DNA of 52,899 bases, the filler included, from Bipalium vagum (Eukaryota), in NCBI GenBank assembly GCA_037834085.1. It is 3 parts of 3 records of this genome, joined end to end, with 100 filler letters (N's around TTAATTAATTAA, not from the genome) between each part and the next. Parts side by side here need not be neighbours in the genome. Positions count along the whole stretch, not along the records: positions 1 to 16,501 come from JBBMKC010107973.1; 2 more parts are not named here. One strand, written 5' to 3'. Positions 1-16,501 of the stretch are shown here, piece after piece. A program made the position numbers and the translations under genes. Under the pieces are notes generated by a model. The model did no database searches, was not told the origin of the DNA, and was given only the letters and a program-made list of their open reading frames with translations. Position 1 is the stretch's first letter. Each line of letters begins with the position of its first letter.

Positions 1-245
1 AATAATAATTGGTTATTATCCAATTCCACCAATACTATGTATCAATACTCCAATGTGACATGAACTTTTTCATTTTGTAAATATTTTTCCATATTATTAT
101 TTTGAAATATATTTATATTTATTACTTTATATTAGTAATAAAATAGTCTATATTAACGAATAACCATATATAGCCTTATTAGACCATTTCTCGTGTATAT
201 GAAGGAATTCGTTGATTATAATATCATTTGCTTATTTGTATATTA

Positions 246-600
246 TTAGGTGTAAAGTTGAAAATGACGTTCTTATAAACGATAATCCCATTTATTAATA
301 TAAATCATTTTAATATTGATGTAAAACATTTGTTTATATAATACTTTTCACGCGCTATCCTTGAAAATATGTCTGAGATCATAAAAGTAAGTATAATGTA
401 TAAGTTTTGTCAATTAATGTGTCTTAATTTCAGCTAAATAAATATCATTTGCGGTACGCAATATTTCTTATCGTTCTGGTTACAAGCGGATTCCACTGAC
501 AAAGAAGTCCGAGTCTTTTGACACAAACCAATCATTTTTCAACATCTTCACTGAAAGTAAAGCATTCTCCAGAGAGAGTTAAAATATTTTGTAGAGACAA
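246..600 (-). mobile_element. Mariner remnants (terminal repeat plus transposase C-terminus)
   Basis: Mos1-like TIR ta|ttaggtgtaaagttgaaaatgacgtt at 246; the minus strand reads EDVEK..DWFVSKDSDFFVSGIRL..PER. Confidence 0.6.
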
Positions 601-969
601 AAGTTCTTCAGATTTTGTTTAAAACTTTTGTTATTTTGAATAATTTTTTTAAACATATTATCGAGATATTGAGACTTTAACTTCGTGAAAAAGGGAGTAG
701 TCATAGCTGTACAGCTAATATATTATTTAGTTATTGTTTATATTTTGTTGATGTAGTTTGAAATCAATTAATTCTGGCCTGTAGCTATATACATTCCTAT
801 AATACTTTCCCTTTATCAACAAATTTTATTTCTTTAATATTCTGTAACCTCTTTTCGATGTACAAAGTTTCAATGTATTTTATATAATTGGTATTTATCT
901 CTCATTTTCATTCACGCTGGACTCTTCAGGCTAACGATTTCAACGAGATTAAAGAGAGAACAATGTGTA

Positions 970-1255
970 AATATAAAAACCTTTGGTTGTTTGTTAAGGT
1001 TTTCCATAACATAAAGTTATTATGACCGTTTCAGTAAGCCAATAATTAGAATGGAAATATTTCCGTAAGAATTATGGAGATAAAAGGCAAATCCTTCAAA
1101 GAAAAGATATATTTGTTAAGAAAATCATTTCCAAAGTGACAAGTGTTCACACTAATCTTCCTTCATCTATGGCGTCAATATAATAGTTCTTTTTTGCATA
1201 CTGCTCGTCAGACAGCTCTTGAGATCTGAAATTAAGAGCTAACTTGAAGCACATG
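970..1255. repeat. About 285-bp direct duplication, copy 1 (partner 7012-7295); covers the peptide exon and its 3' UTR
   Basis: Base-by-base near identity (over 90% by eye) with 7012-7295. Confidence 0.95.
1147..1225 (-). CDS. Paralogous prepropeptide terminal exon, SQELSDEQYAKK-NYYIDAIDEGRLV-stop (may be an orphan or pseudo-exon)
   Basis: Four nucleotide differences from 7187-7265, frame and acceptor intact, same mature peptide; a repeat element is inserted about 50 nt upstream. Confidence 0.6.
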
Positions 1256-1274
1256 GTTATTTATTTGTTATCAA

Positions 1275-1545
1275 TATAAGGATTGGTTCGAACAATTAGT
1301 TTGCTTTAATTTTTTAAAATAAGGATCTCACCCCTAAATTAACGATTATAAATGTTTTTAATTTAAAGTTTTAAAAATTATTAAGTTACGGTTTTGTAAA
1401 TATTTTTAGTTAAAATTTTAAATAAAAATGGCACAAAAGATTTTGATAGATTTTTATAAAGTAAATAATTTAGTTTTAAAAGATAGTGAGATCCATTTTT
1501 GAAAAGTTGGTTTAAGTGATCGGATTTAATGAAATATTTTATTAT
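1275..1545. mobile_element. Non-autonomous interspersed repeat (MITE-like), related copy at 49938-50225
   Basis: Shared blocks tataagga.tggttcgaa.aattagt, ctcac.cctaaattaacg, gtgag.tccatttt.gaaaagtt.gtttaa...atcggattta.tgaaata. Confidence 0.65.
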
Positions 1546-2091
1546 TGATTTGATATCCCATATATATATATTATTTTAAATGACAACACAAGAATATAAC
1601 TACCGATATAACGATAATAATGATAATAAAAAATAAAATAAAAATAATTTTAATAATAATAATAAAAATAAAAAAATCAATATACTTTGCAGCATACGAT
1701 AAAAAGGTAGAAAGACTAAAAATATGAATTATGAAAAATAAAAATTAATTGATCAACTAATTGCTAAATGTACCCTCAGTTTATAAATCGCAAAAATCTG
1801 AAAAATTAATAATTTTATTAATGACTGTTGATTGAGCACAAGTACTAAGCTTTAATTAATAACAGAGGTTGTAAATTATAATTTTTATTTACATTTTATA
1901 ATTATTAATTATCTGGAAATTCTCTAATTGTCGGTATTGTATTTTTAGATTCTTTATTTTGTTAATCTTTATTCAATATTTAATTTATTATTATTTTTAT
2001 AGTAAAAATTTTTAAAAATAAATTAAAATTATAATAAATAATCTTTTTTCATAATTTTTAACATTTCATCAGATTTTAATCATCTAACGAA

Positions 2092-2251
2092 NNNNNNNNN
2101 NNNNNNNNNNNNNNNNNNNNNNNNNNNNNNNNNNNNNNNNNNNNNNNNNNNNNNNNNNNNNNNNNNNNNNNNNNNNNNNNNNNNNNNNNNNNNNNNNNNN
2201 NNNNNNNNNNNNNNNNNNNNNNNNNNNNNNNNNNNNNNNNNNNNNNNNNNN
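2092..2251. other. Assembly gap (160 N)
   Basis: Run of N. Confidence 1.
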
Positions 2252-2984
2252 TACTTTTCAATGTCAGATTTTCATTTCATTTTTGTTTGCTAAGCAAATC
2301 TTTCGCCAAATCATTTTCAATAGACAAAAGTTTCCTTTGAAGAATTATATTTAACAAATAATGTAATCAGTTTTCGTTTTTTCATCTTATAATAAGTTTT
2401 TTGTTAAATTTAAATCTTTTAATGCTTCATAAAAATAGTTTCATTTTCATGTGCAAGTCTGACCTTTTACAATTAAATCACAAAAGAAAACAAAACAATT
2501 TTGTTTTAATTATTCAAAAAATTACATAATTTACAAAAATAAAATTGAGTAAATTGACATTTTTTTTGTATCGAAAACAAATAATTATTGATTTTTTTAT
2601 AAAAATTTAACTTTTATTAATTAACATTGATTGATTTTAACATTTTAATTTCCTTTCAAAGCATCTGACGGTAATTTTCTAGTCATGTAATATTTTTTAC
2701 AATCAATTTAAGTTACTGTGTTAACTGATATTTGTATTACATCAATTACAGTACGAGGAGAACCACAGATTCGGATCACTGGTAAATGTCCTTGATCGAA
2801 AGGTCAGTGGCACATTCGAGAGATTAAGGTTGGCTAAAGTATTTCGTGCACTCAACTTTACTTTGAGAATTTGAAGCATTTAGGCGCAGGGAAACAACAT
2901 GTGCCAATCATAGGAAATATATTAGCATACAGACAGGTTCTATTTTCGAGAAATATCGATTTCATTTAAGTACTGGTTTGAAGT

Positions 2985-3990
2985 TATTAGGTGAGTCAGA
3001 AAGTAACCGCGTTTTCCTAATTTTTAAAATTACCGTATTTTCAGGTACATAATACGCACATGTGTATCATAAGCACGTGGTTTTTAAAAATTTTATTTCA
3101 CGCCTTAAAAAACATTTGTATAATACGCTTTAATATATAATACGCATGAATTGGATCTGTTATATCACAATATTTTAAATGTTTAAATATACCATTTTTA
3201 TATTATATAATATTCTTATATTAAAATATAGAAAATATTTGTTTTAATATTAAAATTAAGTATTTCAAATTTATTAATGTTATTATAATTCTTACTATTA
3301 AAACAATTTAAATTATTATTTTTTAAAATACTTTTTCATAAGTAACTCATTAATAACTCATAAGTAGCGACTGAGCATATGTAAAAAATCCTCGACTGTA
3401 GTCCTACTACAGTTAAGACCTACTTACATATGATTGGAAAGTCATATAAGGCGGGTGACTGAGTACCCCATGAATCTACCGAAAAAAATTAAGCTGTTTG
3501 ACTATCTTTTTGTCAATCACTGATTCTGAAGAACAACAGTGATCCGTTTCAAATCAGACAATTGATGGCAACAAAAACTGTGATCAATTTGACAAATTAA
3601 ATAACTTGATTAAAATTTGTCCATCTTCATTAAACAGAAAAGGTGTCATTTTTCATCAGGAAAATGCCCGGCCACACATCTTGAAGATCACATCTAAAAA
3701 AATTAAAGACTTAGGATGGAAAGTTATCGCTCAGCCATCATATAGCCCAGACATTGCTCCACCAGATTTTCACCTCTTCAGATCTTTGCAGCACTTCTTG
3801 CTTGGAAAAAGATTTCAAAATGAAGATCATATCAAAAAGGAGATCCAATCATTTATTTATCCAGATCCATTTATTATTGACCCTAAATATTCCTCGTCAT
3901 TTGAAAAACGGATGAAATGCTTGGTTGACAAGTGGCAGACTATAGTAAAAAATATATTTTATTGTTTTATTGTATTATTATTTATTGGTG
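2985..3990 (+). mobile_element. Decayed mariner transposon, interrupted at about 3031 by a Tc2/pogo-like end
   Basis: TIR-like ttaggtgagtcagaaagtaaccgcg; *VPHES (WVPHEL), HQENARPH, YSPDIAPPDFHLFRSLQ; stops and an internal deletion; taccgtattttc...taatacgcac end at 3031. Confidence 0.9.
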
Positions 3991-5169
3991 TAATATTGGT
4001 ATTTTTTATTGGAGGAAAAAAGGTAAAAGATCCGAATTTAAGTACAAAAGATAAACAATTTTAATAATTTTAAAGATTTACACAAGTAAATTGTAAAGAT
4101 AGGCGCACTTTTAAACAAACCGCAATGAAAAACATTTTAAAGAATAATAAATGTGAATACACAAAAATACACTTTAAATACAAAAGTTGTTTTTAATTTT
4201 ATATTATTATTTATAAATATTGGCCAGGCTTAATGCTATCAAATATATAAAACAAAAAATATGCAAAAAAAATAATATCATTTTTTGTTATTAAAAAGTT
4301 GGAAAATATTGATAAAAAAATCGACTTTTTTTTATTGATAAATTTTATAATTTATTTTTTATTTTTAAAAAATTTTTTAAATAAAATTTTTGGCTACCAG
4401 CACCGTAGATTACTGTGATGAGGGAATTTTATTTATATTTTAAAATACTTTATATTTTTGAATAATCAGATTACGAATTGAAGATAAGGCGGAATAACGT
4501 AAACTGAGAAAGAAATAAAATAATAATTGATATTATCAAGTATTATTTGATAATTGATGAACGTTGAGCAAGGCAACAAAACGAGTCGTTGTTCGTAGTC
4601 TCAATTAAAGTTGGTAATTAGAATCGGTTCTCACTCCTGGTCTTCGCTTGCCGGGGCAACCCGACCCATCGATCGGGGTAAAAGAAGCTGAGTACAATGT
4701 AAACGAAGAACAAAATGTTTTCAGATGCATCAGAAACATTTGGGGATTTTAATTACATCAGTTTTCTCTTAAATACCAATGGTATATTATTGAAAAACCA
4801 TGAAAAAAGGTCAAATGTACACAGACCATTAAAACAAGCAAGCTTCACGACTAAACACATTTTCATCTTTAATTAAAAATATGCGGAAGAAATAAAAAAA
4901 AACTTAAGAATGTGTGGGGAGACTAATGATAAATAAGTGAAAAAACATTTTTAAAAAGTAAATCACCGCCAATGAAATGAAGAAATAAATATATAAAATG
5001 TTTTCGTAGGATTTGTTTAAATTTTTAAATTATTTATTTATTTATTTCACAATAATAAAATACAAAATCTTTTAATTTAACTTTATGTTTGTGAGGGCGT
5101 TTAGAAACGTTTTGAAAGCGACGGGATTGGTTTGACAATACAGCAAAACTGTAGAGGTCATTTTAATAT

Positions 5170-6250
5170 TCATTTCGAAACAAAAAAAATTATTCAAAAT
5201 AATGGACATTGTTTCACACATTTCTTCCATTTTCCAGTCAATGTTTGGATGCCATCCCAAAAAAAAACTTTTCTGGTTTCGAGGCGAACTATCCAGAGAT
5301 CTCAGTGTTGTTTAGCAAATCTATGTGCCATTGAACGGAACAGGTGAAAATCAGAAGGATCACGATCTGGTAAATACACCGGGTGGGTGAGTACTTCCTA
5401 TTTCATATCTTTTAACATACTTTTAACTGCTTTAGAATTGTGAGGCGCTGCGTTGTCATGTAGAAGAATTACTATTAACTATTAAAGACTGATTCAGCCG
5501 GGCTATTTGGTTTTTGTATCTCTCCGAACTAACACTTTCACTTGGTTGAGAAGCTCATGGTACACAACACCTTGATGAACCCATGCTTTGGGATTTTCAA
5601 AATAGATTCACTTTTCATCTCCTGTCAATAGTCGATGAAAGAAAAACTTTCTTTCGTGTCGTTGTAAGATCATGTCACTGACTACTTTTCTGTTTTCTAG
5701 TTGTCTTTAATTCAGTAGATGAAACAACCATTTTCCTACCTTTAAAATCCTACCAATATCATGTAGAGTACCCGATAATTGCTTGCTGAGTAACACATAT
5801 TCTTATGGCAAGTTGATTTTGCGATTGACAGGTATCTTCATCCAATAACTTTTGTAAATTTTGGTTTTCAAATTTGGAAGTACGGCCTGAGCGTTCTTTA
5901 TCCTTTACACTGAAATCATTACTTCTGAAGCGGTGAAACCAAAGTTCGTGTGTGTCCTGAGATACTACATATTTTCCATAAACATCGTATAATATCCTGC
6001 AGCTTTCTGCGGCAGTTATGTTCATCATGAAGTAATGAAAGAGAACTAGTGTTCTTTGCTTGGCTTAAGTGATGACATATTTAGATCTAAAAAATTTGAA
6101 ATTTTTAACATATTATGAACATATCAATGATTGCCCTATAATCAGATATTATTCAAACAAATTGATTTATATTTCATTTCGCAATTATATTTCGATATCT
6201 CACTAAATCTATTTTAAATAAATCCGCATTATTTATTTTATCTCTTATAT
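5170..6250 (-). mobile_element. Decayed mariner, Mos1/mauritiana-like
   Basis: AESCRILYDVYG..WFHRFRSNDF..KERSGR, TGDEK*IYFENP, LLHDNAAPH, PSDFHLFRSMAH; several stops and frameshifts. Confidence 0.9.
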
Positions 6251-6372
6251 AAATGTTTGAACTTGAACGTTGAAAAACGACATTTATTTCTGACCAACCA
6301 ATATCATTTCCATAAATAAACTTATTTTTTTAACTAGACATATTTATTTGACTTGACGGGATTAATTGTAAA

Positions 6373-7013
6373 ATGGAAAAAATTGAATATCGAGGAATTA
6401 TAAAATTGTTTGTCCTGGAAGTGATCCACAAGGTGGGCTTTGAAACTTAAACAAGTTCATACGGTGATTAAAGCTGATCCACTGACATCAAAAATCATTC
6501 AAGAAATCCATGATATAGGGTTGGATGATCGATGGATAAAAGTGAGAAAAATATGTTCTGCCACAGGCATTTCAGTAGAACGCTTAAGGTATTATTTGCA
6601 TGAAAACTTAAAGAAGGAAAATCCTTGTACAAGATGGGTACCGCATCTGCTTACAATCGCTTGCGATAAGGATAAGTGTAAAGAACTTGGATGAGAAATC
6701 GTATCTCGTCCACCATATTCGTCAGACACGGCGCCATTTGATTTCCATTTATTTAGATCGATGGTACATGGACTGTCAAAACGGAGCTTTTGCAAATATT
6801 TTGTAATATATGAAATTCTATTTTGGCTTGATGAATGAATTTTATCTAAAGAAAAAAATTTCTTTTACAATGGCATTCACAAGTTACCAGAAATTTAGAC
6901 CAATGTTATTGCTCACAATAGGAAATATGTATAAGATAATTACATGTTGTGTCTTTAAAATAAATGCATTTATTTTTTTAAAAAACTTCCGCAGAATTAA
7001 CTGCTACACCTAA
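6373..7013 (+). mobile_element. Chimeric or deleted mariner (Himar1/irritans-like N-half joined to a mauritiana-like C-terminus)
   Basis: MEKIEYRGIIKLF, DDRWIKVRKI, RWVPHLLT, then PPYSSDTAPFDFHLFRSMVHGL, FFYNGIHKLPE and TIR ...ctgctacacctaa|ta. Confidence 0.8.
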
Positions 7014-7295
7014 TATAAAAACCTTTGGCTGTTTGTTAAGGTTTTCCATAATATAAAGTTATTATGACCGTTACAGTAAACCAATAATTAGAATGGAAAT
7101 ATTTCCGTAAGAATTATGGAGATAAAAGTCAAATCCTTTAAAGAAAAGATATTTGTTCAGAAAATCATTTTCAAATTGACAAGTGTTCACACTAATCTTC
7201 CTTCATCTATGGCATCAATATAATAGTTCTTTTTTGCATACTGCTTGTCATAGAGCTCTTGAGATCTGAAGTTAAGTGCTAACTTGAAGCTCATG
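7012..7295. repeat. About 285-bp direct duplication, copy 2 (partner 970-1255)
   Basis: As above; the left edge abuts a mariner terminal repeat at a TA. Confidence 0.95.
7187..7265 (-). CDS. Paralogous prepropeptide terminal exon, SQELYDKQYAKK-NYYIDAIDEGRLV-stop
   Basis: ttcag|A phase-2 acceptor, TGA stop; mature peptide 10/13 identical to that of the 13.6 kb gene; upstream exon(s) uncertain. Confidence 0.72.
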
Positions 7296-7528
7296 TTAAC
7301 TGTCTATTTTTTAAAAATATTATCGATATAATAGTTAGCAAATTGAAGTGAAAGTACATGGTCACTTCTTTTGAGAAATAGTGAAATTATCACTTCTGTT
7401 ACCTGATATCAAATTGATCAAATACATATTGCAGAAAGTGGTCAGAAAGTGTATTCAGCTAGTACGAGACTACATTGAAAAATAAATTGTTTTTATCTTT
7501 TGATTTTGTTGTTTTTATATTTATTCAC

Positions 7529-7651
7529 CGTACTTTTCAACCCACTCTCATCCATGTCATCCACATAATTTTTATTGATGGAATAATGGATAGGTTTTCT
7601 TCTAAGAGAATTCTGTCTGAAAATCTTTTGGATTCGTCTATTCAAATAGAA
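7529..7651 (-). CDS. Candidate diverged prepropeptide exon FYLNRRIQKIFRQNSLRRKPIHYSINKNYVDDMDESGLKST
   Basis: Pyrimidine-rich ttttctcctag acceptor, plus an internal phase-2 ttttcag|A acceptor at 7617; gtgaat donor. SLRR and NYVDDMDESGL echo ALRR and NYYIDAIDEGRL of the paralogs. Confidence 0.45.
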
Positions 7652-8559
7652 CTAGGAGAAAATGTGATATTTCTTGTGTTATTTTAAAAAATATTAAAAC
7701 ATTAATATTTCCTAATATTTTATATTATATAATCATATAATTTTAAATCTGTTTATAAATGTAATGAGATCATTTCAACGTTACTTATTTCAAAATATGA
7801 TTACACTTCACACAGTCATCTTAAATTAAACATTTTAATGTTGTCCGGGTTTTTGTTTCCTACATTGTATGGGGTGACTAAGAAAGTCCTCCAAGTATAT
7901 TCAAGCCAAAACCTTTGTATCCTTAGTCTATTGATCTGATATGATCATTCATTCCTAAACTAAAAGGAATACTCTCCAAAATGTTAAATGGAAATTGGAC
8001 GAAAAATTTACAAATAAAAATTGAAAACAATTTCCAAAAATAAACACGGAAACTTTATTAAAATTTATCAAAAAACGAAATAAATTAGAAAAAAACCCAA
8101 AACCAAAATTGGTTTTATCTAAGCAAGATAAATTCAATCGGAATTCAATTACAGAGGTCAGGATTCGGTTTAGGTTTTATTAATCTGGGTCGATATCAAT
8201 TGTCCCCGTTCCTTCCATTGTAAATTATTTCGTGGGCAGATAGATTAGCTTACGTTAATTAAAATGAGGAAATTGATAAAGCCCACCATGTTTCTGTGAT
8301 AAAAGTGAATTAGAGGTTTGAGGATTTATTATGAAAACCCATCAAATAATAAATGGATCAAAGTACTTTACTCAACGTCGAATATTTTCTGGGAGGATCT
8401 TTTGAAAACTTTAATTAAATTAAAAAGTATTCACTAGATCCGAATATGTACATAATGAAGCAGGGGAAAGTTTACTTCAGTTACCCCAAGCCTCTGGGAG
8501 ACATTGATTTTGAACAAAGTTTTGATAAATTATTAGCGGTATGCATAAGTTTCCATCGT

Positions 8560-9707
8560 TTAAAGACAAAATTTTTATTGATATTTTGATTTGTTCAATA
8601 AGTCAATACGTTTTTATTGAACAATTTAGGATCATTTATTTAATATAACAAAGTCTGTGGTAGCTTCATTATTCCTCACAGATACAAGTCTCTCTCTGCA
8701 AACAACCTCTCAAGATCTTGTTTATAAACGTATACCAATAAATTAGTTCTGAAGGGAGCTAAACAAATGTAAATCGGAATACACATGGTCTGGATTATAA
8801 AGGTGACTGTGACAATGCATCCCACTCAAGCTCGAGAAATATTTGGCGAAACAAATTGTGGGGAAGACCACCATTTTTCAGTTGACCAGCTCAAGATTTT
8901 TTTGTTGGATGGAAACAGTAGATTTCTGAATTTATATTTTTATTCGTAAGGATTTTCTTGTAGTAGACAAGTCCCTTCCAATCCTATCAGATTGAAAGCA
9001 TAGCCTTCTTCTGGTGAATATCTACTTTTGCTTGCGTCTCCTGTGTTTTATCTTCTTTTAGACGAGCTTCTTTTTCTGTAGAAATTATTGTAAACTATCC
9101 ACTTTTCTTCCCCCTTAATCATGCGCCTGAGAAATGGGTCGCCTTCTTTGAGTTTCATGAGTTGATTGCAAATATCAATTCGATTGACTTTGAATTTCTT
9201 TCAATTCGTACGGAACCCAGACATTCAATTTTTTGATGAAATTAGCTGACTTTTTATGACCGTGAATGGTTCCAACGGATAAATTTAGAGCACTCACAAT
9301 TTCTTTGACCGTCGAATGACTATTTACTTTGATGACAATCGTAACAGGTGTGCCAGGCCGATGAAAATCGACGAAGGAAAACTTTTCAGCCACGGAACCA
9401 CTTCTGGTATTGTCTTTATTCACATTTTCGACATAAACTTTCATTATTTTTTCTGGCCTCAGTGGTTCCTTTTCCTATTTTGAAGTAAAAGAACAAAATT
9501 TTCAGTATATGCTCGTCAAAGTTCTCCATTTAAAATCACTATAAAAACACAAAAATTTTAAAAAATGAGGGTCAAAATGTACTTACATTTCTGTTTTTAA
9601 TGTAAATTATGATGTACTGTAGTATAATGACACATTAACACTAAAAATAATTGGAACCATTTACACTTCTAAAAATAACGGACTGACTTATTGAAAAATC
9701 CAATATA
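8560..9707 (-). mobile_element. Decayed near-full-length mariner
   Basis: HILKILFFYFKIG, WVPYEL, EKWIVYNN, HQKKAMLSI..DWKG, SDLHLFSSLQN; TIR-like end at about 9680-9707. Confidence 0.85.
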
Positions 9708-9714
9708 AATAACA

Positions 9715-9855
9715 TGGTACATTTAATCAAAATATTTCCCATCATGATTAACTAATTTTCCCATCTTTCTAGCCAAAGATTAAAATATTCGGTGAAAAAC
9801 TTTTTTGGGCATGGTTTAAGTAAAATCGACTGATTTTCTGCACCTCTTCAAAACT
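9715..9855 (-). mobile_element. Mariner C-terminal fragment
   Basis: FEEVQK...KLVNHDGKYFD. Confidence 0.5.
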
Positions 9856-12800
9856 ATAATGTACAACAGAAAAACTATGTGGCCTGGTAAATTATGGATA
9901 CCTTTAATACTTCTACTAAAACCTACCTAGTCAATCTAAAGGGACTGACTGTTTTCTTGACATTGTGTAGTTAAGTGTTGTTCAATTCCTCACTTTAAAT
10001 TCTTAATTAAAAATTCAACTAATTTTAGTTCTGTTGAGATGACAAATATTGTGTCGGTATCATTGCAAATATAAACTTATGTCAGTTAGGAGAAATGAGA
10101 AAGATGCAGTTATATATTTAAATGCTGCAGACCTCATATGTGGAATAATGCACATAATGTCTTAAGTCTCATAACACCGTTATTAGAAATAATTTACTCT
10201 ATCGTCATCTGTGTGCGTAAAAATCAAAATTTGATCCATATGCTTATTTTCATACACGTGTTGTTATAATGTCATTCTTACCAATAAGTAGTAAAATAAT
10301 ATTTTTTAAAAGAATACCAATAAGTCAGGTCTGAAGTGGTAAAGTTATTAACAAAATAGAAAAACTAGTACGCAACGGTTCACTCACAATATAACACTAA
10401 TCTTATTTATCAGTAAAACGTTTATCAAATAACATCATATGAACTTGTTGAACAAGTAAGAGTCGGAGGAAGGGGTTCCTTAAAACAAATCCCAAATAGA
10501 TTGTAAGAAAATATTTTAACCAGTACCTGAAATTTCCAAAACTCATAGGTCTTTCTGGTTTTAGAATTACTTATGTTTTATTGCTTATTAAATCTTAGGG
10601 TCTGTTAAGTAGTAGTGAAGTTATCAATTATCGGAGGGATACAATGGGAATTTATTCAAAGTCTTAGTTCAAAAGTGAAAGCAAAAAGACGTTATATTTT
10701 ACAAAAGACAAAAATTAAAGGTAACAAAGGACTTTTATTCAGTTGAAAAAAAAATTATTATAATAGTCATATATGGTGATCTTTTTTGAATAAGCAAACC
10801 ATAACAAAAAGATATGGAACAATTAAACAGATTTGTATTTTATTCGACCAAAGATTTTCTCCTCAAAAAATCAATTTGGACATGATGGGCACCTTTTTAA
10901 TTATTAATTTTTTTTGTTTGAACCTGCCAATGTTAGCATTATGCTAATTCTGAGTATGATTCCCTCATTTAAACAGGCTCCTATTAACATAATAAATGTC
11001 ACTTGAGGTATTCTATGGTACATAGGATGGATAAAACGTTCCCTAAATACATAATTATCCATAAAAGTTTTCTCCCTGGTTTCCCTTCGTTGAGGTCTAA
11101 AGTTTTGTTTTATTGATATTTCTTGCTTTATAAAAATCTTTTATTAAACCAATCTGGAAATTTACCTTTGCAAAAAAAAATTCGAAATAATAATAATATT
11201 AAAATGAAAATGAATTTTTTGCAACATATTTTCATTTTATTCAAATTTAATCAAATTATGATAAAAAAAAGAAAAAAGAAAATTCAATATTAAATTATCA
11301 ATAAAAGAAAAAGAAAAATATTCTGCTGGATAAAGAGTAATGAAATTTCAAAGACATTGTCAAAAATATAAAAGAAAGGATAAGTAATATTTTAAACGAA
11401 TATATTTAAAAATAATATAATAAATTTTGTTTTGCAGCAAAGAGAAAAATGCCTTTGGTTAGCGTCAAGTCTGAGATTTCCATTAATAAATGTTTTAATG
11501 AAATGAAATGCTCACCAAACATGCAAATGATATGGAAATAATTCTTAATATTCGAAAATTCTATTCAAATCATACTATCATCCGCATTATTAAATCAGTT
11601 ATTTTTTCTCCATCATTAATAATATTTTGTTTAAATAAATTAAAAAATATTTTTTATATTTTTCTTGTACTAATCACAGTTGACAATATGGATTTTTTTT
11701 CTGAAAATTATGTTGATTAATTAATTGAAAATTAAATTAAAAAAATAATTTTATTAAAAAAAAAATTTTTTAATTTAATTTAATTTAATTTTTTTAAAAA
11801 ATATTTTTGTTAAAATATATTTTATTTAAAATAAAATAACCAATTAAAAAGTTGAATAATGTGGGTAGTATTATAAATTAAATAAAATAAATTAAAACAT
11901 AAAACAAATAAAATTGTAAACAAAAATAAATAAATAAAATTATTGATTTTTTCAAAAAAAAGAGAAAAATGTCTTTTTATTTAGGAAAAACAATTATTAA
12001 TTAAAATATTAAAATAAATATAAATATAAATACCCCTTAGTTATATTTATATTTATGGAAATAAAATAATAAAATAAAAATAATTCTTCCATTTTAATTT
12101 ATTTTTCTACTGAAAATTTCTATGTTTTGATTTTTTCTATTTTTAAAAATCTTATCAAATATTCATAATTTAATACAAAACTATTTTACATATAAATGAA
12201 TTTAATGAGAGAAAAATTGAGCCTTTTTATTCATTATATGATCCCATTTCGATTTTTCTTAGTGTTCGATCAGAAATTAAATTTTGTTTTTCTGCGAAAA
12301 AGTACATTTTTAAATTTTTTATATTTTTCGTTTCTCTGTAAATAAAATAAATCTAATCTAAATAAATATAATAAATCTTCTTTGGGCTGACACGCCTATT
12401 TTTAATTTAATATTTATCCATTTGTAAATCCTTCATTATATACAAAAATAATAAAACAAGATCATTAAATAAATGGATAATCTAAATAATTTATAATAAA
12501 GGAAATCAATATGTTTAAATCAGATAAAAAAGATCACGTGAATACAGAAATAATAATATTAATAAATTATTTTCGTATTGTATGTATTAACCTAATAAAG
12601 AAATTAATATAAAATAAAACTATATAAATTAAAATAATTATTATATGAATTAAAAAAAATATAATAATTTTAAAAATAAAAATATTTTCAAATTATTGAA
12701 ATGATGTATATAAAATTAAATTAAAATTTTTTAAAAAATTGATTTTTTTTATTGGTTTTAAAATATTTAATCACACTTTGTTTTTTGGGAAAATGAAAAT

Positions 12801-13563
12801 TATTTCATTTTGTTGTAACCTTCATTTGTTTTAATATTCAAATTTAGAATTACTCTGAATATTTTGATCATATAAAGATTTAAATCGAATTAATTAAAAA
12901 TCAAACTTAACAAAATCAACTTTTCGAAACGATTTATAAAAAAAATTTTAAATTGTTAAATTAACCTGACAAGTAAAAAAATAAATAATTTTAAAAAATA
13001 TGTATAATTATATTTAATAATAATAATTCATAGTAAAATTAATGATATTTTAATTTAAATCTCTTATTTATTTTTCAATTATATTAGAGTAGATTTCAAA
13101 ATATAGAAGATGAATTTCCTGGAGATTTTAAATTTTAAATTCTTTTTTTTGTTTAAACTAAATTAACTTTATGTTCATTTTCTTTAGTCCAAAAATATTC
13201 TATTTTTTCATATTAAATTTTCATTCAGCAGTAGAGTCGACTTTCTTGTCGACCTTTACGTATCTCATACGAAAAGTGATTTATAAAGACGTTTACTGTT
13301 TAAAGTAAAATAGTCTACCAATGTTGACGGATATTTCCATCTTTAACCTTTCAAATGAAGCATTTAAACAAAATTTTGAAAAATGTCATAATCAATTAAA
13401 AAATGTTACACATTCCAAAACATACTCTAACATAAATATTAACAAAAACCAAATTATCCATTTTATGCAGTAAAATAGAAACGCCTACTTTTTCTTTAAT
13501 TAATAAAGAAAAAGGAAAGTTTAAACAACAAAATGATCTTGAAAAAACAATTGGTGACGAGTG

Positions 13564-13771
13564 TTACCTTTTAATCAGTCTTCCAGCGTCTATTGCGTCT
13601 ATATAATATGTCCTTTTGGGAGCCGTCTTGACGTAATCTCTTCTCAGGGCATACGGCTGAGCTTTTCTGAATTGAATATACTCATTTTTATGTCACTCAA
13701 TCAATCAGCACTCACTGGAAAATAAAAGAAATCGTCAACATGATCAGTGAAAACCGGAAAAATATGTTCAT
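13564..13771 (-). CDS. Small secreted prepropeptide (putative neuropeptide precursor), 52 aa, complement(join(13564..13666,13716..13771))
   Basis: ATG at 13771; 49-nt gtgagt...ttcag intron (13667-13715); TAA at 13564-13566. Protein MNIFFRFSLIMLTISFIFQKAQPYALRRDYVKTAPKRTYYIDAIDAGRLIKR has a hydrophobic signal peptide and RR/KR sites. The peptide is conserved, with synonymous changes, in paralogous exons at 7187-7265 and 1147-1225. Confidence 0.85.
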
Positions 13772-14124
13772 CTTTATCTTTAATTTTTTGTTTTTATTAA
13801 TAGAATTTATAAGGTGGCTAAAATAATGAAATTCTATTTATTAATGAAATAGAAATAATAATCCGCCAATGAAAAGCTGTCCATTTATTTCAGGATATTT
13901 AGTGGTCAAATGTCATTTCTGCTCATGGGGGACTTTAGCTTTTGGACTTAAATGGGATATTAAGTATCTATAGAAGAAAATTGTGTCAATAAAAATTGTT
14001 TCAATGTTTTCAGATTTATTTTTTATATTTATATTTTTATGTAATTTTATTAATTATCAAAATTTAAATATTATTTATTATATTTTTTGCATTACTTACT
14101 TTATTAATATTTTTTTAAAATTAC

Positions 14125-14790
14125 CATGTAGTGGTTAATTCCCACAAAATTTGACAGATGAAGAAAATGGGTTAAATGTTTCCAAAAATGTTACAGAAAT
14201 TTAACAGACCTCGTTCAAATTTAATTTACAACATATCGGTTGATAAATGTGGGTTTGTTCGTTTGACCCTAAAAGTAAACAAAAATTCACTGGTTGGGTA
14301 TTTGAAGACATATCTCAATAAACAAAAGTTGTTTGGTTCCACAGAGATAAATAGGAAATTATTGAATATTTCCTCGTTTTTAAGAGACACTTGGAAACGA
14401 TAACTTAAGCGAATCAAAGGACCATCAAGGCTTAATGGTATTTAGAAGTTTGCTTACCTCATGTGATTTCCAAAATTAGAAGCAATAATCGAAATCTATA
14501 AATTATTCGTCATCAAGACATACAAATCTCATACAGTCCGTCAAACCATAGATATCACAGCCATTAGAATCTGTAATTAATGGCACAGCCTGTATTCACC
14601 TGACTTATGACTTCTTTATCTCTAAACTATCAAAAAGAAATTACGGGGTAAGCAGTTCTCGTCACTTGAAACAGCTTTTAAAAAATTCAAGGTTTTCGTA
14701 TCTAAACTTAAGAATAAAAAAAAATTCGAAACGAAAATTTGTTCGATCGCATACAAAGGTATGTTAACGTTTATTGGATTGGTTATTTTG
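14125..14790 (+). mobile_element. Decayed mariner transposase fragment
   Basis: IP..LTDEE, KMLQKFNRPRSNLIYNI, WVCSFDPKSKQK..WVFE, YSPDL, KKKLRGKQFSSLE. Confidence 0.75.
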
Positions 14791-15199
14791 CGTTGCTCTG
14801 CAGCAGAATAAGTTAATGTTGGAAAAAAGCTGGTAATTTTCTTTTTTCTTAACACAAGTATTACCTTCTACGATTGTCCTGGGAGATTTATTTCTTACAA
14901 TATATTACAATTTCGTTAACACTTAAACACCAATCAAATGAATTTAAGTTAAGTTGGTGTCGAACTGGGTGGAAACGTCCCATTATTTTACATGATTTTT
15001 CGACAGTTATACATCAAATATTATAAATAATTTAACGTTTGTTTAAATTTGAGCATTTTTAGCTTTTTTTAAAAAAATTTTAATATCAGAAAGTTTTGGT
15101 TCTAGTACTGAATCCGATATTAGTATATCGGATGCTAATTTGAACAGTTTGGTCGTGGTTTGTCATCTATTTGTGACAATGAAAATGAAATTATGTCTA

Positions 15200-16400
15200 C
15201 CTTTACGGAACCATTTGGCAGGTTAAATCTATGTAAGTAGACGCAGAAAAGCATTAAATGCGACGAGAACACATTGATGGATTAAGTGTTCATGGTCGTT
15301 GCAATTGTCGTAATAATGCTACCAGAATATATTTTTTGATTAGACTGCCTTGGAAATTATCCTGGAATGTATCAAAAATAAAACAAATAGTATGCAGTTG
15401 AACTAGTTAGATATATTGGATTGACTATTTTAGTAGGTCTGTACAAATATCGAGAAGAGTCGATAAAATCTATATGATCAAAAGCAGAATGGCGAAAATG
15501 CATAAGCCAGCTTATTATTTGATACAGATTTGAATTAATTACCAAATATATCAGATTTGACTTATGTGGAACCATACAGAGAAGACCTCTTGTCTGTGAA
15601 AGTTCCCATCGATGGGATGTTCTATAAATGGGACCAAAAGTTTTCTAATCACTTTTAATATGTCACTGTTGATGAAACGATTGTGCAGTTCTGAGTACGG
15701 AGTTTCAAGCAGTATATACCTAAAAACCTTCAAAACATGGTATATAGTTCTAGCTCCTTGTGATGAATCAATTGAATAATGTCTTCGAATAATGCATTGT
15801 CTCGGAAAAAATAATGAAACAAATCGACCTCCAGCCAACAGTTCAGAAGAACAAATGTTTTTGGCATTTACGATCGACCTTGTCACAGACATTTTTTTAC
15901 TTCACAGAATCTCTTACGAAAACTAGGTGTTCATAACTTGGGTTTCGAAGGAGTAATATGAAATAATCACTAAGAACCTCCGAAAGAGTTTGTCTACAGA
16001 AAAAATAGGGCTGGTTCATAGATTTTTGGTGTCAGTGCAAATGCAACTTTGATTTCTTATGCGCCTGAAGATAACAGACAGTGGCACTACTGTCAAGTGT
16101 TTATTGATAATTTGACAAAGCAATCATTGATAATATTGGTAAATATTGGGATGATCATTTGGATCAAATGTTGAGAATGCGAAATTAAAACATCAAGATG
16201 GCCAAAATATGTATTTTAACCAATGATTGGTGTCACATCGTTCAACTCAATTTTTCTTTGGCACGAGATCAATGGGCATAAAAACGGAAATCGAAGACAA
16301 TTTCTAAATATACTTGGAGCCGAACTATGTGAAAGTGAATAAGATGATCACGGTTGTATGTACTTTACAAACGCACTTCCTCAATGTAGAACTCCTAATA
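15200..16400 (+). mobile_element. Decayed piggyBac-family transposon
   Basis: YVTVDETIVQF*VRSFKQYIPK.PSKHGI, VTD.FFTS, ATLISYAPEDNR.VALLSS, DHLDQM, SRWPKYVF; many frameshifts. Confidence 0.85.
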
Positions 16401-16501
16401 AAGGGTGGTCAAGGTTTTATTTCCCGATGTTCAAAGGTAAATAAAATTTGAACTGAATGAAATTTTTTAAAACTTTCTTTGGAAATACAAAGAACACAAA
16501 T

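Follow-up and report, generated by a model that had tools for sequence, protein, structure and literature searches.

A small family of short, split genes in the planarian Bipalium vagum with the layout of peptide prohormones

Does a short, AT-rich locus in the genome of the planarian Bipalium vagum hold a genuine prohormone gene that a search for open reading frames (ORFs) passed over, and, if it does, what kind of peptide would be released from it? Planarians are a main model of regeneration, and peptide signaling acts in them on the germline, behavior and regeneration. The stretch of DNA analyzed here (the window) comprises 52,899 nucleotides, filler included, of assembly GCA_037834085.1, and consists of three parts of three records joined end to end. 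The locus lies in the first part (positions 1 to 16,501, from JBBMKC010107973.1), on the minus strand at 13564-13771, and it had been predicted from the sequence to encode a neuropeptide-like precursor split over two exons. We call it copy A, because relatives of it were found elsewhere in the genome. On the minus strand, every base and coordinate of the proposed exon/intron/exon model of 56, 49 and 103 nt agrees with the genomic sequence, as follows.

13806-13811, minus strand: TATAAA box, 40 nt upstream of the copy A ATG, start to start
13771-13769, minus strand: ATG of copy A, read from the minus strand
13716-13771, minus strand: exon 1 of copy A, 56 nt, Met and hydrophobic leader, whose 3' end (CA) begins a split Gln codon
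13667-13715, minus strand: intron of copy A, 49 nt, phase 2, GTGAGT...TTCAG
13564-13666, minus strand: exon 2 of copy A, 103 nt including TAA, with spacer, KR, 13-mer, KR and stop
13573-13611, minus strand: predicted mature 13-residue peptide of copy A (the 13-mer), flanked by KR at 13612-13617 and KR at 13567-13572
13566-13564, minus strand: stop codon TAA of copy A

Local translation of the joined exons of copy A gives a 52-residue product, and the gene is complete: the ATG, the leader, the canonical donor and acceptor, the open frame, two dibasic sites and the stop are all intact. The 13-mer has a predicted [M+H]+ of 1483.78 and a net charge of -1. Without splicing, exon 1 meets a TGA at the donor, which closes its frame; copy A is absent from the plain ORF list for this reason, in agreement with the proposal that the gene is invisible to an ORF track. 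The predicted TATAAA box is present upstream of the ATG and is weak evidence by itself in AT-rich DNA. The length of the intron fits that of genuine introns of this genome, which were read as 49, 52 and 58 nt, plus longer ones, in Arp-like genes, and as 50 nt in a gene of the Planarin family described below. Downstream of the KR-GT junction, no conserved third exon was found in copies A or C. The 451-bp segment that contains copy A occurs once as DNA in the 440.8-Mb assembly of 272,664 contigs; it is single-copy DNA and therefore no dispersed repeat, so that a high-copy dispersed fragment of a transposable element (TE), which the original prediction had named as a possible refutation, is excluded.

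The surroundings of copy A are of a different kind. Just downstream of it, 11000-13500 has a GC content of 15-18% and consists of low-complexity direct and inverted repeats. Relics of mariner/Tc1-type transposases (3606-4064 and 6440-6691 on the plus strand, 5762-6028 and 9178-9444 on the minus strand) occupy the approximately 6-kb gaps among the three peptide-gene copies of this contig; at 5762-6028 there is a match to HTH_48, the ORF at 3606-4064 is DDE-like, and tblastx gave a match to contig C54588. A 71-residue ORF at 5132-5344 (plus strand) was considered as a glycoprotein hormone alpha subunit and rejected as the relic of a dispersed repeat: its match to Pfam Hormone_6 (E 0.0034) is below the cut-off, six PDB alpha chains gave E values of about 0.4, and the repeat has at least 150 copies, mostly ridden with stops, so that the hormone matches are matches by chance. 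Elsewhere in the genome, cytoplasmic actin and at least ten HSP70-family genes have intronless full-length frames, while Arp-like genes have many short introns, and the HSP110-like gene, an intronless ORF, has 74% identity to its counterpart in Dugesia japonica, with the next best match at 47% or less. This identifies the genome as that of a triclad planarian, apparently distinct from D. japonica; actin was too conserved to serve for placement.

The genome of B. vagum was searched for paralogues with exon 2 of copy A alone (33 residues) as query; the exons were searched separately and were joined for the translation check only. This protein search found paralogues on two other contigs, namely copy C on contig C54588 (70% identity, E 7e-5) and copy D on contig C249877, as well as copy B on the same contig and strand as copy A (match 7190-7264), 6.3 kb downstream of it. 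A profile search added a fifth copy, copy E (match 1150-1224, E 1.3e-10). When a degenerate DNA pattern of the motif core was run against the genome, it gave five matches, which are copies A-E, and its reversed control gave none. Three copies (A, B and E) stand in tandem on JBBMKC010107973.1. A high-copy repeat with similarity in the flanks is ruled out, there being one DNA copy and five copies of the motif.

All five copies have in common a dibasic site, KR or KK with an invariant first Lys, followed by [TN]YY[IL]DAID[AE]GRL[IV], and each precursor (A, B, C, D and E) holds one 13-mer. A stop follows the 13-mer directly in copies B, D and E and after KR in copy A, while in copy C the 13-mer is followed by KR and then by a non-conserved tail of 24 codons. 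The 13-mers have a net charge of -1 to -2 and no Gly at the cleavage end, and that of copy C has the same predicted [M+H]+ (1483.78) as that of copy A, or 1370.70 if one residue shorter; the predicted values are 1482.76 for copy D and 1540.76 for copies B and E. Exon 1 of copy C is ATG-led and hydrophobic, is exactly 56 nt long, and has the same phase and the same split Gln codon as in copy A; it is followed by an intron of 50 nt (GTTAGT..GCAG). The parts of the other two copies on the copy A contig are as follows.

7301-7359, minus strand: candidate exon 1 of copy B, 59 nt, hydrophobic leader, same split Gln codon; best upstream candidate
7266-7300, minus strand: candidate intron of copy B, 35 nt, phase 2, GTTAAC...TTCAG; uncertain
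7187-7265, minus strand: exon 2 of copy B, with short spacer, KK, 13-mer (7190-7228) and TGA
1147-1225, minus strand: exon 2 of copy E, with spacer, KK, 13-mer (1150-1188) and TGA
970-1277, strand not assigned: arm of a 311-bp duplication, 91% identical to 7012-7320, holding exon 2, about 170 nt of 3' flank and the 3' part of the intron

Exon 1 of copy B is less certain than that of copy A because the implied intron has only 35 nt, shorter than every intron verified in this analysis, and for copy D the sole leader exon is a candidate that lies 1.08 kb upstream. The 13-mers of copies B and E are identical in protein, and upstream of copy E neither an intact exon 1 nor a donor was found. Copy E is probably a partial recent duplicate of copy B whose donor and leader have been lost, and so a dead copy. 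Farther upstream there is an assembly gap (a run of Ns at about 2090-2250), in which a displaced first exon of copy E could hide. An in-frame ATG is present inside or just before the putative intron in copies B (7254-7291, minus strand), E (1225-1254, minus strand) and D; the unspliced ORFs that start from these ATGs have 35-38 residues and no credible leader, and over this stretch copies B and E differ by three changes, two of them synonymous and one non-synonymous.

The differences among the copies are of the coding type. Across the 15-codon core, which spans the dibasic site and the 13-mer, variable columns number 4, 3 and 14 at the first, second and third codon positions, respectively. Synonymous differences outnumber non-synonymous ones in the core by 9 to 1 between copies A and C, by 10.5 to 1.5 between D and B, and by 9 to 4 between A and D; pN lies at 0.03-0.20, and in most pairs of old copies pS approaches saturation. 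Copy D has G/C-ending codons where those of copy A are A/T-ending, and the two peptides are almost identical. Stop codons occur in the window at 0.072 per codon. The coding exon recurs four times with coding-type substitutions and is therefore more than a chance ORF. Outside the core, the spacers of copies A and C share 4 of 16 residues and 50% of their nucleotides; the spacers, introns and flanks of copies A, C and D gave no alignment, with the introns aligning no better than unrelated AT-rich DNA and the flanks compared with 11760-11811 masked, and the only similarity in the flanks of any copies is the local 311-bp duplication of B and E. Purifying selection is thus limited to the dibasic site and the 13-mer, the pattern expected of a prohormone with a constrained cleavage site and mature peptide. 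This confinement, seen in five paralogues, favors the proposal that the product is the 13-mer following KR. A second peptide, DYVKTAP, had been proposed between RR and KR; it falls in the unconserved spacer, where 4 of 16 residues agree with the nearest paralogue, and is therefore probably not bioactive.

The leader was judged by a hydropathy heuristic only, as the maximum over 10 residues. The maxima were 2.71 in copy A (with an uncharged run of 12), 3.07 in copy B and 2.19 in copy C, as compared with 3.59 in a Planarin control. Among background ATG-led ORFs, 4.8% reach a hydropathy of 2.5 and 10.8% reach 2.0, and the leaders of A, B and C rank in approximately the top 4%, 2% and 9%, respectively, of ATG-led open frames in all DNA examined; AT-rich DNA gives hydrophobic ORFs fairly often, which weakens the leader evidence. 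In each of copies A, B and C, no phase-compatible Met-led exon within 2.5 kb is more hydrophobic than the one immediately upstream. A hydrophobic Met-led exon 1 in three copies, judged by hydropathy only, and KR or KK in all five agree with the predicted layout of a signal peptide plus dibasic sites. The string TTTTCCGGT is present in exon 1 of copy A (13750-13761) and of copy C, with a one-base offset relative to the frame; the frames of the two exons rejoin by a Ser codon at nucleotides 22-24, and this looks like a compensated frameshift in the leader. Taken together, the copies very probably constitute a small planarian-lineage family of preprohormones of 45-52 residues, of which copy A is a functional member.

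A peptide of this class has been recorded in another planarian. Ong et al. (2016, J Biol Chem 291:8109, PMC4825013) listed in their Table S2 the de novo MS/MS tag TYYLDAIDDGRL, with an average local confidence of 97% and a match to transcript dd_Smed_v4_3151_0_1, from a sample of whole regenerating Schmidtea mediterranea animals. The only description of this transcript was that it has a signal peptide, with no BLAST match, and the authors named spp-20 only; TYYLDAIDDGRL was neither named nor studied (PMC4825013). The tag is identical to copy C at 11 of 12 residues and to copy A at 10 of 12, with Asp where the B. vagum copies have Ala or Glu. It starts at the Thr that is predicted to follow the dibasic site here, and thus points to the same cleavage, and its 12 residues end one short of the 13-residue end predicted in B. 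vagum. The transcript is presumed, from the peptide alone, to be an orthologue of the B. vagum family. Since TYYLDAIDDGRL was seen by MS in S. mediterranea, the peptide class appears to be made in vivo in that species, and a near-identical peptide with the same first Thr supports the 13-mer as the predicted product. An amidated product, TYYIDAIDA, cut at the internal G-R, had been offered as an alternative; it is disfavored because none of the copies departs from G-R-L and because GRL is retained in the MS tag, with the internal G-R uncut and no amidation.

The peptide had also been suggested to be undescribed, which holds insofar as it is unnamed and fails insofar as a presumed orthologue stands in the 2016 supplementary table. 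The motif is not among the 51 prohormones of Collins et al. (2010), text and supplements (PMC2953531); motif strings were not found in the searchable main texts of the literature, nor was the transcript id dd_3151 in any of them. The peptide class has already been seen by MS, yet it has never been named, annotated or studied. In large protein libraries, the 42-codon open frame had no homologue; phmmer against 1.84 billion representatives gave a single match, a spurious low-complexity repeat protein, the ESM Atlas gave no usable match, and of 69 pattern matches in a metagenome scan none was confirmed. Such nulls are expected of large libraries, because the gene is unannotated and encodes about 50 residues.

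How would these genes work? The signal peptide encoded by exon 1 would direct import into the endoplasmic reticulum once the short phase-2 intron is spliced out, and a PC2-type convertase may then cut after the KR or KK that precedes the 13-mer. In copies A and C, the trailing KR would be trimmed by a carboxypeptidase-E-type enzyme. The acidic, non-amidated peptide would be secreted to act as a neuropeptide or peptide hormone, presumably via a G-protein-coupled receptor. It is moderately probable that the genes represent a previously unrecognised planarian neuropeptide system, either a divergent offshoot of the pedal-peptide/orcokinin type or a flatworm-specific peptide with its own receptor. 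In the offshoot form, a precursor with many peptide copies would have given way to several tandem genes with a single copy each.

The family may instead be real and secreted but originate from non-neuronal cells (parenchymal, epidermal or gland), the product being an exocrine or paracrine peptide. We regard this as rather unlikely. For several prohormone genes of planarians, expression has been reported outside the central nervous system (Collins 2010, PMC2953531), and TYYLDAIDDGRL came from whole regenerating animals. Against such a source, a short conserved peptide with a conserved dibasic site immediately ahead of it has the layout of convertase processing in regulated secretion; with a net charge of -1 to -2, the peptide is acidic, unlike cationic antimicrobial peptides; and its closest likeness in sequence is to pedal-peptide-like neuropeptides. 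It is more improbable that the family is real while copy A itself is silent or decaying, with other members as the expressed genes. Decay does occur in the cluster, where neighboring copy E has lost exon 1, and the one read run found to contain the copy A stretch is non-RNA, with no RNA run among those found; the ATG, leader, splice sites, frame, dibasic sites and stop of copy A are nonetheless all intact, and 9 synonymous versus 1 non-synonymous differences against copy C mean that both lineages have long been under constraint. That the locus is a chance ORF of AT-rich intergenic DNA or a fragment of a TE is highly improbable and is already contradicted by the paralogue analysis: the window does have a GC content of 15-34% and is full of mariner relics, and hydrophobic ORFs are common in AT-rich DNA, but the DNA is single-copy, the five protein-level copies have saturated synonymous sites and rare non-synonymous changes, the intron phase is conserved, and a presumably orthologous peptide was seen by MS.

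A preprint of 2026 puts the number of known neuropeptide genes in planarians at 52 and anticipates that further short transcripts encoding a signal peptide and dibasic sites will come to light (bioRxiv 10.64898/2026.10.10.758126). The peptide class described here is not one of the 52. If the interpretation as an unrecognised neuropeptide system is true, the present family would be the 53rd named planarian neuropeptide gene family. An orphan MS tag is now linked to genes whose structure, copy number and conserved peptide are defined, so that RNAi, in situ hybridisation and receptor deorphanisation can be undertaken directly. Prohormone genes that are split and very short and that ORF annotation misses can, furthermore, be recovered from the genome alone, by a paralogue search within the same genome together with the codon-position pattern of the differences.

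With regard to known planarian peptides, a resemblance to the pedal peptide/orcokinin family had been pointed out from the sequence of the 13-mer; the comparison is of the pedal-peptide type, with which arthropod orcokinin is grouped. The pedal-peptide-like peptides (Smed-ppp-1 and ppp-2) are likewise acidic, non-amidated and 11-13 residues long, with an aromatic pair near the N-terminus, Asp, Ile three residues on, Gly and a Leu-hydrophobic end. Compared with them, the 13-mer has one residue more following the Tyr pair, and it also has a second Asp and, ahead of the final Leu, an Arg. The B. vagum genome contains an unannotated pedal-peptide-like ppp-1 gene and two ppp-2-like genes (contigs C186329, C15379 and C200772), and their peptides differ slightly from the S. 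mediterranea sequences. In global BLOSUM62 alignment over 5000 shuffles, the 13-mers scored z 2.6-3.0 against the B. vagum ppp peptides, and a fraction of 0.007-0.018 of the shuffles reached the ppp score; this significance is overstated because the comparison was picked post hoc among about 15 families, after the family table had been viewed. A profile search with the 13-mer family gave no link to the ppp families. The ppp precursors carry 5-8 tandem copies of the peptide (2 to 7 visible in B. vagum), whereas each 13-mer precursor carries one. Kinship with pedal peptide/orcokinin is thus possible but doubtful, and is kept as a lead because of the post hoc choice and the contrast of one versus many copies: the resemblance in sequence stands as suggestive, and the profile search did not extend it.

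The Planarin family (Smed-spp-6, -7, -8, -9 and -17; Collins et al. 2010, PMC2953531) provides the closer comparison in gene build. Its precursors have 57-62 residues and yield a non-amidated C-terminal peptide of 13-14 residues after KR or KK, confirmed by MS, and the family grew by local duplication (PMC2953531). A tiny precursor, a non-amidated C-terminal peptide after a dibasic site and local duplication are shared with the 13-mer family. Unannotated orthologues of the Planarin family are present in the B. vagum genome, including those on contigs C257744 and C97444, with peptides slightly different from their S. mediterranea counterparts (82% identity), which sets the genome apart from that species. 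In sequence, the Planarin peptides are unrelated to the 13-mers (z of about 0.3, the level of shuffles); membership of the 13-mer family in Planarin was rejected, as the match is no better than shuffles and the Planarin orthologues lie at other loci. In one B. vagum Planarin gene, a TATAAAA lies 39 nt upstream of the ATG, followed by a signal-peptide exon of 75 nt and a peptide exon, separated by a 50-nt intron that ends in AATTCAG; this gene shares the build of copy A, including the spacing of the TATA box. Planarin is an architectural analogue of the 13-mer family, not its kin.
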